DNA of 64,000 nt from Dimorphilus gyrociliatus. Its lineage: Eukaryota; Animalia; Annelida. The DNA lies in assembly GCA_904063045.1 (NCBI GenBank), contig CAJFCJ010000001.1, positions 1,302,001 to 1,366,000 on the forward strand, written 5' to 3'. The notes beneath the pieces are model-generated. The model was not told the origin of the DNA and ran no database searches. It saw only the letters and a program-made list of their open reading frames with translations. The translations under genes were made by a program, and so were the position numbers. Of this stretch, positions 3,264-29,203 are shown one piece after another; the first letter of the stretch is position 1, and every line of letters starts with the position of its first letter.

Positions 3264-3942
3264 TTATGAATTCATAGTAGATTGGGTTTGCATTTTTTGT
3301 TGCATGATCTTTCCATAACCTAAAAATAACAGCGATAATTGAAACAGCGTATTTTTTTGTGAAACTTAAGTATTTACCTCCTCTTCCGCTATCATAATCT
3401 GTACGATATTCGTCTCGAACTTGGCCACCCGATTTTCCCCTTCCATATTGTCTTCCTTCCTTGAAACCTGCATCCCAATCAGTTCTCACAACTCTTTCAT
3501 CCAATCGTGTGCCGTTAACATATCGCATAGCATTTTCAGAATCCTCTCTTGTATAATACTCAACAAAACAAAATCCACAAGGGGTTCGTCTAACCTTATC
3601 CAGGCCCATGATAATTCGTTTTACATCTCCACAACGAGAAAATAGTTCATGAATTTGTTCTTCAGTTGTGTAGAAGGAGAGGTTTCCAACATATAATGTA
3701 GTCGTTTGATTTAATAATCGATCCTGATCTTGGCGAGATCCCTGATTGAGCGATAATATGCGTGTTAAATAAATATATCGCTATTTAAGTTTAAATACTG
3801 ATTTAAATGAACATTATTAAGTAAATTATGAGTTGAATAACGAATAAAATTAAATTCTTACTTTAAAATGTTGGTCGCGATATTGTGAAACAGAGGATAC
3901 TTGATTATTGTTCAATCGCCTTCGTTTGGGAGCGGACGACAT
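3264..3942 (-). CDS. NCBP2: Nuclear cap-binding protein subunit 2 (CBP20), 3 exons
   Basis: SQYRDQHFK|[79 protein letters not shown] matches the CBP20 RRM. Confidence 0.97.
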
Positions 3943-4441
3943 TTTGAAATAAATACGAAAATTCTTTGTGTCTGTCCAACATGAAATAATGGTAGAATAG
4001 TAAAAGATTACTTTATAACTATTTTACTTGATTAAAGGAAGTAACGTATCTTTTTCTATTTGGAAAAATAAAAGCCTATTTTAACCTACTAAAATCTAAA
4101 ATATTTTATTACAACATTATATGTTAATTACAAAAGTTGTCATTCTTATTAAACTAAAAACTGCATATCTTTTCAAATTGTTCTTTTTTTTATCTATATT
4201 ACGAACGTTACAATTAGAATTCAACAATGTGCAAAGTTAAAATACTTGATATTCATCTTAAATATAGTTAAAACAAACGATAAGATAAATTAAAATATAA
4301 TTAAAGACTTTAGAAAAGAATGGTTATTTTAATTTATTTAGTGATTTTTTACATTTTGTTTTTTGTGTTTTTTTAAAGCTTGATTTTTTTATGCGATAGG
4401 TTTAAGTCGTGAATTAAGGAGTACACAAAAAAGTATTTAGT

Positions 4442-26634: not shown

Positions 26635-29203
26635 ATGGCGGACGTGGTTAGCGCTCTTGCTGTAAGCGGTCAAAGAACTACAGGACAATCTATCAGAACA
26701 CAAAATGGTAAGTTATAGTTCAGTATAACTTAAATTACTTTACTTATTCTATCAATTTGCGGTCAATTTGCTCTTTTTTATCTCGTAAAAAGAGAATTTT
26801 TTGATTACCGGAAAAATGAACACGTGCATTCTTGTTTCAACCTATTTCTTAATTATGACTTTTTATTACAGTTACGGCCGCTCTTTCCATTGCTAACATC
26901 GTCAAAAGCAGTTTAGGACCAGTCGGTCTCGATAAGATGTTGGTTGACGATGTTGGAGACGTCACTATTACTAACGATGGGGCAACCATATTAAAACTGC
27001 TAGAAGTTGAACATCCAGCAGCAAAAGTTTTGGTTGAACTTGCTCAACTGCAGGACGAGGAAGTTGGTGATGGCACTACTTCAGTCGTAAGTACACAATA
27101 TCGCGAAATTAGCATATTACGAAGAATTAATTTATTCAGGTTATGATCGCCGCTGAGTTGCTTAGGAATGCTGACGAATTAGTAAAATGTAAAATTCATC
27201 CCACCTCTATAATCAGTGGCTATCGTCTAGCATGCAAGTAAGTTTAGCGACAAACAACAAACTCCCAACAACTTGCTGTTGAAATAATTAATTGTTTCAA
27301 TAGTATATACATTGGGAAAGATAAAGAAATGATACAGCTTTATGTCTTTTATAACTCTTTACTAGACAAAATAGTATTTTGTAACAATCTTAATTTTTTC
27401 AGGGAAGCTTGTAAATATATTCTAGAGAATTTTACAATAAGTGTTGACGATTTGAAGAGTGAATGCATTGTTAACGCTGCTAAGACTAGCATGTCGAGTA
27501 AAATTATTGGAACGTATCCTTTTTTCAAAAATTATTCAATGAACACCCTCACCCATTCCTGAGTATTTCGATACCCAGATTAGTTACGGGGGTTAAATTA
27601 AACTACAGCGTTATTTTATCATTTATTTTAAAATAGGTGATCTATATGTGCTCTAAACAATTATTTTTTCCTTGACTTTTCATTAGTGATGCAGATTTCT
27701 TTTCGAATATGGTAGTTGAAGCAGCTTTCGCCATAAAAACCTCTGATGGAAAGGGATCCTACAAATATCCCATTAAAGCTATAAATGTATTGAAAGCCCA
27801 CGGTGGAAGTACGAAAGAATCTATCTTAGTTAATGGTTACGCTCTCAACTGTACAATCGGTTCTCAACTCATGCCGAAGCGAATCACTAACGCTAAAATA
27901 GCCTTCCTTGATTTCTCTTTACAAAAAACAAAGATGAAATTAGGAGTACAGGTCTTAGTTGAAGACCCTGAAAATCTAGGAAAGATTAGGGAAAGAGAAT
28001 CAGATATTACCAAAGAACGTATTCAAAAAATACTAGCGTCTGGGGCTAATGTTATTTTGACAACTGGGGGAATAGACGATTTATGCCTCAAATATTTTGT
28101 TGAAGCAGGGGCAATGGCAGTTAGAAGGTGTACAAAGAAGGATCTTAAAAGATTGGCTAAAGCCACTGGAGGTAAGAATTGATTTGCACTTTTATTTTTA
28201 ATTCCTTCTATTGCTACATCCTGTTCGAAATAAGGGCAGGCTGAAATCTCTTGGAGGATATAGTAGTATTATGTTTTACTGGGTATTAATAGTTAACTTA
28301 TTCTATTAATACATTCGTACGCATCTAACAATCTCTACTTTTCAGGTCAGTTAGTAGTAACTTTGGCCAATTTGGAAGGAGAGGAAACCTTTGAATCTGC
28401 CTTGTTGGGAAACGCTGAAGAGGTTATACAGGAACGAATCTGTGATGACGAGTTGATTCTTATTAAGGGGTAATTAATATTTACCTTAATACCATGATAT
28501 TTAGTTGAATATTTTATATAAAACGGAGTTACCCATATCACTTTGCTAATAGGTTTTTATATAGCCTATTGGTTATACCATTGGGTGAAAGTAGAGAAAA
28601 TATAGCTAGTAAATAGTGGCTTATGATCTTGGTCATTATTTTAATATCTTATTCTACAGAACGAAAGCACGATCTGCCGCGTCCATAATTTTACGTGGAG
28701 CGAATGATTTCATGGTTGATGAGATGGAACGCTCTATTCATGACGCTCTTTGTGTAGTCAAGCGTGTGCTTGAGTCCAAGACGGTTGTTCCTGGCGGTGG
28801 AGCCGTAGAATCGGGCCTGTCAATTTATTTGGAGAACCTCGCAACATCTTTAAGCTCCAGAGAACAATTAGCGATTGCTGAATACGCTCACTCTCTGCTT
28901 GTCATTCCCAAGCAACTGGCCGTCAATGCCGCAAAAGACTCTACGGATTTGGTAGCAAAATTGAGAGCTTATCACAATACGGCCCAGACAAAGAAGGATC
29001 GTGCAGACTTAAAATGGATTGGTCTGGATTTGGAGAAGGGTGTAGTTAGAGATAATAAAAAGGCTGGTGTGTTGGAACCAACAATTAGTAAAATTAAATC
29101 TCTGAAGTTTGCTACCGAGGCCGCTATCACGATATTGAGAATTGATGATATGATAAAATTGGAACCTGAAAGAAAAGATCCAAGAGGAGGTTATGAGCAA
29201 TAA
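26635..29203 (+). CDS. TCP1: T-complex protein 1 subunit alpha (CCT1)
   Basis: [92 protein letters not shown]. Confidence 0.98.
27262..27389 (+). ncRNA. Candidate box H/ACA snoRNA (SNORA20-like 5' hairpin) in TCP1 intron 27238-27402
   Basis: Stem TCCCAA/TTGGGA, pocket CAACTT/ATATAC, 12-13 bp upper stem, H box AGATAA (27319-24) exactly 14 nt from the pocket. Second hairpin TGTCT/AGACA, with ACA (27384-86) 15 nt from its pocket plus 3 nt. Confidence 0.8.
27514..27686 (+). other. TCP1: U12-type (minor spliceosome) GT-AG intron in TCP1
   Basis: 5' splice site GTATCCTTT, branch site TTCCTTGAC (27668-76) about 10 nt before AG. Splicing gives SSKIIGT|DADFFSNM in frame. Confidence 0.9.
27545..27662 (+). 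ncRNA. Candidate box H/ACA snoRNA inside the U12 intron
   Basis: Hairpin 1: ACCCTC/GGGGGT lower stem, UUCG-capped upper stem, H box AAATTA (27595-600). Hairpin 2: ATCATTTATT/AATAGGTGAT, ACA (27657-59) 15 nt from the pocket plus ATT. Confidence 0.65.
28202..28333 (+). ncRNA. Candidate dual-guide box H/ACA snoRNA in TCP1 intron 28172-28345
   Basis: TCCTTC/GGAGGA stem, pocket TATTGCT/ATCTC, H box ATAGTA at 14 nt. Perfect 10-bp GTATTAATAG/CTATTAATAC stem, pocket TTACTGG/ATTC, ACA (28328-30) at 15 nt. Confidence 0.85.
28529..28649 (+). ncRNA. Candidate SNORA20-like H/ACA snoRNA in TCP1 intron 28470-28659 (5' hairpin clear, 3' half uncertain)
   Basis: TTACCCA/TGGGTGA stem, pocket ACTTT/TATAC, GCTAATAGG/CCTATTGGT upper stem, H box AAAGTA (28588-93) at 14 nt. 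The 3' hairpin is weak and has only an ATA variant box (28644-46). Confidence 0.55.

Follow-up and report, generated by a model that had tools for sequence, protein, structure and literature searches.

Two introns of the TCP1 gene of the annelid Dimorphilus gyrociliatus each contain an element with the anatomy of a box H/ACA small nucleolar RNA (snoRNA). Both elements, here called candidate 1 and candidate 2, lie in a 64,000-nucleotide stretch of contig CAJFCJ010000001.1 (assembly GCA_904063045.1, positions 1,302,001 to 1,366,000 of the forward strand), referred to below as the window, whose own numbering is used throughout. On balance, and with modest confidence, we read both as intron-encoded guides of the SNORA20/SNORA29 clan that have been hosted by TCP1 since before the annelid-vertebrate split, candidate 2 aimed at uridine 613 of 18S ribosomal RNA (rRNA) and candidate 1 at the adjacent U614. 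What is shown directly is the anatomy of the two RNAs, their conservation, their membership in the family, the orthology of host gene and intron, and their complementarity to rRNA. The best classification for candidate 2 is as a divergent orthologue of SNORA20, which adds a member to a known family; candidate 1 is a SNORA20-clan paralogue whose guide strands would re-aim it at the neighboring uridine.

Anatomy, conservation and family membership

The + strand of the window encodes CCT-alpha/TCP1, recognized by its Cpn60_TCP1 exons. The intron that holds candidate 1 comes after the exon ending in ...GYRLAC and is the intron-4 equivalent. Four introns are delimited by spliced RNA contigs from three runs. 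The two host introns, the first and last of the four, are 165 and 190 nucleotides (nt) long, and introns 2 and 3 measure 173-174 nt. Each candidate occurs as a single copy in the 77.9-Mb genome. As comparison species we used one relative, whose syntenic locus (L001) carries TCP1, an ankyrin gene and a PRMT-like gene, with exon peptides that are 94-100% identical. Coordinates of all features are collected in Table 1.

The 5' hairpins of the two candidates follow one pattern, CCCA...(A)ACUU(U)GCU...upper stem...(A)UAUAC...UUGGG, and in both RNAs the H box starts 14 nt downstream of the base that opens the 3' pocket strand. An earlier interpretation of the window made without database searches (the sequence-only reading) had located these hairpins, described their shared architecture and counted the 14-nt spacing, and all of this is present in the sequence as described. 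Candidate 1 has the lower stem UCCCAA/UUGGGA and an upper stem of 13-14 base pairs (bp), in which one U-A pair is replaced by a compensatory C-G pair between the window and the relative. Candidate 2 has the lower stem UUACCCA/UGGGUGA, the pocket strands UAUCACUUU and UAUACCAU, and an upper stem of 11 bp. Both RNAs and their orthologues fold into the hairpin-hinge-hairpin-tail arrangement; the 3' hairpins are weak and are present in both species.

Conservation follows this anatomy. The 5' hairpins align to the relative almost without gaps, at 77% identity for candidate 1 and 85% for candidate 2. The upstream intron flanks show 24% and 43% identity, respectively, with insertions and deletions, and the 3' hairpins 39% and 55%. 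The H boxes of both candidates differ in their letters between the species and keep the ANANNA pattern. A scan of the 3' hairpin of candidate 1 against 18S, 5.8S and 28S rRNA revealed no conserved guide and no convincing target.

The 3' end of candidate 2 has an unusual position. We infer that the ACA at its 3' splice site, the sole one open to it, serves as its ACA box; the sequence around this ACA, AUUCUACAG, is identical in the relative. Within 28640-28659 snoRNA and splicing signals thus overlap, and with this box the 3' end of the RNA would arise from splicing itself. As a separate observation, the 3' pocket strand of the 3' hairpin at 28641-28649 (UUUUAAUAU) is complementary to 18S 610-618, the stretch that is bound by the 5' pockets. 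Such pairing would put U619 at the pocket (4+9, spacing 17), and 7 bp of it are kept in the relative. The surrounding sequence is AU-rich and includes the branch site, and the complementarity of the strand to 18S is probably due to chance.

Table 1. Features of the TCP1 locus in the window, followed by clan copies in two fish-like TCP1 loci (numbered within each locus)
Feature	Position	Strand	Remarks
TCP1 intron with candidate 1	27238..27402	+	GT..AG joint in RNA contigs of three runs; exon-by-exon tblastn mapping
Candidate 1, predicted H/ACA snoRNA (5' hairpin, H box, 3' hairpin, ACA + 3 nt)	27261..27389	+	ends predicted; fold z -4.3 (whole RNA)
Candidate 1, 5' hairpin with guide pocket	27263..27318	+	lower stem, pocket and upper stem fold
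Candidate 1, 5' pocket strand CAACUU	27269..27274	+	pairs 18S 616-621 (AAGUUG); same in relative
Candidate 1, 3' pocket strand AUAUAC	27305..27310	+	pairs 18S 608-613 (GUAUAU); U614-A615 left unpaired
Candidate 1, H box AGAUAA	27319..27324	+	14 nt after pocket top; relative AAAUAA at aligned position
Candidate 1, 3' hairpin	27330..27383	+	weak, AU-rich; hairpin ends at ACA in both species
Candidate 1, ACA box	27384..27386	+	16 nt before 3' splice site, room for 3-nt tail; ACAAU kept in relative
TCP1 intron	27514-27686	+	spliced RNA contigs
TCP1 intron 3	28172-28345	+	spliced RNA contigs
TCP1 intron with candidate 2	28470..28659	+	phase 2, between ...ELILIK and TKAR...ILRGAN; RNA joints
Candidate 2, predicted H/ACA snoRNA	28529..28659	+	predicted 3' end = intron end; fold z -3.0 (whole RNA)
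Candidate 2, 5' hairpin with guide pocket	28529..28588	+	gap-free against relative; pocket and lower stem 100%
Candidate 2, 5' pocket strand ACUUU	28540..28544	+	pairs 18S 615-619 (AAAGU)
Candidate 2, 3' pocket strand UAUAC	28574..28578	+	pairs 18S 608-612 (GUAUA); U613-U614 unpaired; register of vertebrate GUUAUACGC
Candidate 2, H box AAAGUA	28588..28593	+	14 nt after pocket top; relative AAAUUA at aligned position
Candidate 2, 3' hairpin	28599..28653	+	hairpin in both species; stem sequences differ
Sole ACA open to candidate 2	28656..28658	+	within 3' splice site CUACAG, 14 nt past 3' hairpin upper stem
SNORA20/SNORA29-clan copies, L045	1432-1565, 2608-2734, 5435-5574		
SNORA20/SNORA29-clan copies, L046	390-529, 959-1100, 1806-1887, 2198-2329		

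Rfam yielded no match in the window at gathering thresholds, and its SNORA20 model found nothing genome-wide. Family membership was assessed with a covariance model, R1, built from four vertebrate SNORA20-family 5' hairpins only, to avoid circularity; the vertebrate TCP1 loci (L045, L046 and L047) were obtained via exon-level protein matches. The search space comprised 115 kb, made up of the window, the relative and seven other invertebrate TCP1 loci. Within it R1 scored candidate 1 at 28.0 bits (E 3e-4), the candidate 1 orthologue at 26.2 bits (E 8e-4), the candidate 2 orthologue at 21.6 bits (E 0.011) and candidate 2 at 19.8 bits (E 0.028), and there was no further match with E < 3. A bona fide SNORA29 also receives 19.8 bits from R1. 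Since the model singles out these elements and their orthologues, both are predicted H/ACA snoRNA genes of the SNORA20/SNORA29 clan, in agreement with the SNORA20-like identity that the sequence-only reading had given them.

Covariation in the stems is strong. In a model-based alignment of ten family members, which was fitted to the model and thus favors the structure somewhat, 92% of stem cells are paired and compensatory changes occur in 6 of 12 pairs. None of 500 shuffles reached this covariation score, and sliding the pairing partners reduced the paired fraction to about 40%. Given eleven family members aligned with MAFFT, RNAalifold predicted no structure, as pocket length varies among them. 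A further element elsewhere in the genome, at L050 1501-1571 (-), equal to G000:C7:37290-37360, scores 22.6 bits on the SNORA20-family model; it has a GCUG/CAGU stem base and a 3' pocket UUUUACG.

Predicted target register of the guide pockets

The ribosomal DNA (rDNA) unit of this genome was fetched and delimited with Rfam. It contains the target motif GCGUAUAUUAAAGUUG exactly, at 18S 606-621, and the conserved 18S motif on which the sequence-only reading had relied therefore holds for this species. The human 18S map includes Gm644, Psi649, Psi651 and Am668 (Psi, pseudouridine) and has nothing at 652 (PMC6182160), consistent with the earlier statement that the 652 equivalent is not known as a modified site. 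For these four positions to fall on G, U, U and A in the motif, worm 606 has to be human 644, which makes U613 the equivalent of human 651 and U614 that of 652. In the literature, whose supplementary tables were poorly covered, we found no record of a pseudouridine at the 652 equivalent or of fly Psi18S-640.

To define targets, every uridine of 18S, 5.8S and 28S was scanned for canonical bipartite pairing with two unpaired bases, an intact upper stem and a distance of 13-17 nt to the box. The top target of candidate 1 is 18S U614, with a score of 15; the runner-up scores 8 for the window copy and 9 for that of the relative, and U614 ranks first in both species. The duplex has a 6+6 Watson-Crick core, of which the 5' side is extensible to 9 in the window. 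In the relative the 3' side reaches 10 bp (6+10), CA having changed to CG with GUUG as the following bases. The 12-bp bipartite score of candidate 1 was matched by 3 of 1500 shuffled pockets, and that of the relative's version by 1 of 1500. As a control, a predicted snoRNA in TCP1 intron 3 selects 18S U1602 (8+4) in both species, a position that we take, by motif counting, to be the Psi1643 site that is pseudouridylated in human.

The top targets of candidate 2 common to both species are 18S U613 (5+5, score 10) and 28S U2617 (7+3, score 9.5). Downstream of the upper stem, family alignments show ...GU-UAUAC(G/C)C... in candidate 2 and in all vertebrate members alike. Candidate 1 in both worm species reads GU-A-UAUAC there, with A27305 as its inserted base, and has one base fewer further on. 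Ahead of the upper stem the sequence is ACUUU-GC in candidate 2 and AACUU-GC, with one U fewer before GCU, in candidate 1. Together the inserted A and the missing U displace both guide strands of candidate 1 by one base, leaving U614-A615 unpaired instead of U613-U614; the H box stays at a distance of 14 nt, as the inserted A replaces the first pairing base. The one-base shift on both strands toward the second U, which had been proposed before the rRNA of this species was consulted, is thus recovered with U614 as the best target in both species. By parsimony, the shifted state of candidate 1 is derived and older than the split of the two worm species.

A looser pocket could in principle return candidate 1 to U613, with A27305 paired to U27274 and three or four target bases unpaired, in which case the two RNAs would be redundant and there would be no new site. 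We consider this improbable. The minimum-energy fold of free candidate 1 does pair U27274 with A27305, but in the ancestral U613 register the 5' side of the RNA provides no more than 2 bp and the pocket stands 13 rather than 14 nt from the H box. Vertebrate SNORA20 works with 3 bp on the 5' side (PMC2653536), so the family tolerates weak or irregular duplexes, and redundant paralogues are common, as in the fish loci, where three to five copies have an identical UAUACGC strand. The shifted register nevertheless provides 12 Watson-Crick pairs around the canonical two unpaired bases, and the relative keeps both shifted strands while its duplex grows. These features argue for U614 as the target of candidate 1.

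Shared introns, contrary evidence and rival readings

In chicken, intron 9 of TCP1 hosts ACA20, whose 5' hairpin guides 18S-612 with 3+7 bp; ACA29 is listed as an orphan in TCP1 intron 1, and ACA27 lies in RPL21 (PMC2653536). In the vertebrate locus L047, SNORA20 (130 bits) occupies 3839-3968, between the exons at 3669-3776 (...ELILIK) and 4058-4249 (TKAR...). L047 and L048 are vertebrate metagenome contigs whose exon peptide is unlike the mammal-type matches, and they were not taken as human. Candidate 2 lies in the L047 SNORA20 intron, with the same phase 2, the codon being split after its second base. In many animals exon-level homology begins exactly at (S/R)(T/P)KAR...ILRGAN in nearly all matches, which indicates that the preceding intron is widely shared among animals. 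The deeply conserved pairing of SNORA20 with TCP1 that the sequence-only reading had inferred is borne out by chicken ACA20 and by the position of candidate 2 in the vertebrate SNORA20 intron. That this shared intron was inherited is suggestive rather than proven.

The intron equivalent to that of candidate 1 is 83-97 nt long and empty in two fish-like loci. The fish-like loci L045 and L046 carry three to five SNORA20/SNORA29-clan copies, in introns 1, 3, 6, 7 and 10 (Table 1). This spread of family members over several fish TCP1 introns indicates that copies duplicate and move within the host gene.

Several results weigh against the interpretation of the two RNAs as SNORA20-clan guides for U613 and U614. 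Given the mobility in fishes, the intron sharing could be a coincidence, with roughly 1 chance in 6. In six other invertebrate TCP1 loci the equivalent introns are too short for a snoRNA or give no family match (loci with short or empty equivalent introns and no family match are L005-L011, L020 and L049). The Rfam SNORA20 model, the comparison that the sequence-only reading had suggested, gives candidate 1 20.2 bits (E 8.9) over the 5' hairpin only, below the threshold of 60, and does not match candidate 2 at E up to 10; the label is therefore recovered below threshold for candidate 1, whereas candidate 2 resembles SNORA27 weakly (25.3 bits, E 0.22; orthologue 27.6 bits), without reaching its gathering score of 64. 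The 10-bp match of candidate 2 was reached by 60 of 1500 shuffled pockets (4%), and loose guide scans returned scores equal to it elsewhere in the window. Further points concern the anatomy. The ACA of candidate 2 lacks the usual 3-nt tail, which would be 1 nt here. The 3' hairpin of candidate 1 is weak (-6 kcal/mol, z -0.2), and at 27380-27402 its ACA overlaps a branch-site-like UGUAAC, an unusual layout. Public RNA contigs from four runs are spliced mRNA with no intron coverage, and are uninformative on snoRNAs. Finally, conservation is measured on one close relative.

Since 4% of shuffles equal candidate 2, complementarity alone does not settle its target. The sequence-only reading had assigned it to the first U; the family register and the 5+5 pairing at U613 agree with this, although the match is not statistically unique. 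The assignment to U613 rests on the family register more than on statistics.

In this light candidate 2 could instead be a SNORA27-type guide with 28S U2617 (human Psi3694) as its substrate, alone or together with 18S U613, so that there would be no simple division of two uridines between two RNAs. We regard this as unlikely, though it deserves more weight than the other alternatives. SNORA27 is the best Rfam match of candidate 2 and of its orthologue, yet both scores are far under the 64-bit threshold. Candidate 2 has the run UCACUUUGCCAA, identical to the SNORA27 consensus, and in both species its pocket pairs 7+3 with 28S AUG[UC]AAAGUGA, with a score close to that for 18S U613 and 7 rather than 5 bp on the 5' strand, which when lengthened to UCACUUU (28538-28544) pairs with 28S AAAGUGA; this, too, counts against a pure U613 guide. 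On the 3' strand, however, the 28S pairing consists of U.G, A-U and U-A only, where vertebrate SNORA27 has CAUUCA, and part of the resemblance is free, as U[CU]AAAGU is common to the 18S and the 28S target. A guide for 28S Psi3694 is expected, since the human site is fully modified (PMC6182160). RPL21, the ACA27 host in chicken, holds no SNORA27-type guide here, and no other SNORA27-like guide was found in genome-wide searches, which were not exhaustive. What favors SNORA20 is that GUUAUAC...UGGG fits this family without insertions or deletions and that candidate 2 is located in the SNORA20 intron of TCP1.

Some searches connected with this question gave no usable candidates. A genome-wide SNORA27 match on another contig (33.8 bits) was rejected, as it is without guide motif, stem and ACA. 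When the genome was searched with gapped patterns for further guides to 18S U613 and 28S U2617, more than 1000 and more than 3000 matches, respectively, came back, near or below the reversed-pattern control; such matches have no value unless they are filtered by structure. The loose guide scan, extended to all loci, gave many spurious AT-rich matches. An RPL21 intron (L051, about 1735-1920; G000:C9) contains a C/D-box-like element (UGAUGA ... CUGA), not a SNORA27-type H/ACA RNA.

A last reading takes one of the elements, or both, for a relic whose RNA has ceased to be made or to act, with conservation due to short divergence or to splicing signals. Of the alternatives it appears to us the least probable. 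It would fit the missing RNA contigs from the introns, the ACAs that fall in the splice site of candidate 2 and on the branch-site-like motif of candidate 1, the weak 3' hairpin of candidate 1 and the comparison with a single species. Against it, flanks in the same introns have diverged to 24-43% identity with insertions and deletions, but candidate 2 keeps its pockets and lower stem unchanged and gap-free, and the H boxes hold ANANNA despite substitutions. Equivalent introns in other animals can be 100 nt or shorter, whereas the host introns here just fit an RNA of about 130 nt.

The neighboring introns of the window were also surveyed. TCP1 intron 3 contains a third H/ACA-type snoRNA (predicted, 28202-28333), the one used as a control above; its hairpins are 84% identical to the relative and its flanks 37-42%. 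Its H box reads AUAGUA/AAAGCA and its ACA lies at 28328-28330. The pairing with 18S U1602 is made by the 3' pocket, and Rfam gives no match to the RNA at E up to 10. The intron at 27514-27686 shows no support for a snoRNA: only about its first 24 nt are conserved with the relative, and its fold is no better than that of shuffles (z -0.25).

Proposed mode of action and comparison with known systems

Processing, expression, ribonucleoprotein (RNP) assembly and both pseudouridines would follow from the established rules of H/ACA RNPs. Each RNA would be freed from its spliced intron and trimmed by exonucleases to an RNP-protected core, a hairpin-hinge-hairpin-tail RNA of about 130 nt, and would assemble with dyskerin/Cbf5, Nop10, Nhp2 and Gar1. 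The 5' pocket would then grip 18S 608-621, so that a single unpaired uridine, 14 nt upstream of the H box, is offered to the synthase. With its ancestral register, candidate 2 would leave U613-U614 unpaired, and U613 (human Psi651) would occupy the catalytic position. In candidate 1, a paralogue from a different intron with one base more in the 3' strand and one base fewer in the 5' strand, A27305 would pair with U613, U614-A615 would stay unpaired and U614 (human 652) would be presented. As both guides would bind overlapping rRNA, they would have to act in turn. Neither 3' hairpin shows a conserved guide, and both probably have a role in structure or assembly only.

If the guides act in this way, a specific rRNA pseudouridine is predicted, and the pair would be a clean, datable case of a guide gaining a new target, by duplication within the host gene and then a one-base slip on both strands. 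A snoRNA family could stay with its host gene, perhaps in one and the same intron, for over half a billion years, despite compaction of the genome to 78 Mb. The minimal introns would also illustrate how tightly a snoRNA and splicing signals can be packed, one ACA being located on a branch-site-like motif and another within a 3' splice site. A further-reaching version, which we hold to be possible but doubtful, is an 18S Psi doublet at 613-614, the second position made by the re-aimed SNORA20 duplicate, with an ancestral copy that may serve 18S U613 and the 28S Psi3694 equivalent with one pocket. If this is true, candidate 2 would represent an extant intermediate between SNORA20 and SNORA27 in specificity. 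Paralogous H/ACA guides for neighboring sites are a known theme, as are orphaned paralogues such as SNORA29 in the same host, which makes the finding instructive rather than startling.

Among known systems, the closest is vertebrate SNORA20/ACA20 (RF00401, clan CL00030), whose 5' pocket binds 18S GCGUAUA-UU-AAAG and picks the first U (human Psi651, chicken 18S-612). Candidate 2 shares with it the TCP1 host, the same phase-2 intron, GUUAUAC...UGGG and the 14-nt spacing, but pairs 5+5 rather than 3+7, has an upper stem and a 3' hairpin that are unrelated in sequence, and has a 3' end that abuts the splice site. Candidate 1 differs from SNORA20 in lying in another intron and in being aimed one base further on, at the second U.

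SNORA29/ACA29 (RF00429, same clan) is also a TCP1 paralogue, so a family pair in one host occurs in vertebrates as well. The hinge of candidate 1, GGGAAAGAUAAA, resembles the SNORA29 sequence GGGA(U/G)AGAU(U)AAA. Unlike SNORA29, whose pocket by consensus reading forms no canonical 18S duplex, candidate 1 has a perfect 12-bp duplex. With SNORA27/ACA27 (RF00443), candidate 2 shares UCACUUUGC(C/U)AA and the GCCAA/UUGGU stem base, and on the SNORA27 28S target, ...UGAAUG-UC-AAAGUGAA, it can pair 7 bp on the 5' strand but only 3 bp (one G.U) on the 3' strand. It differs from SNORA27, which has RPL21 as its host, in being located in TCP1 and in having the 3' guide strand UAUACC in place of CAUUCA.

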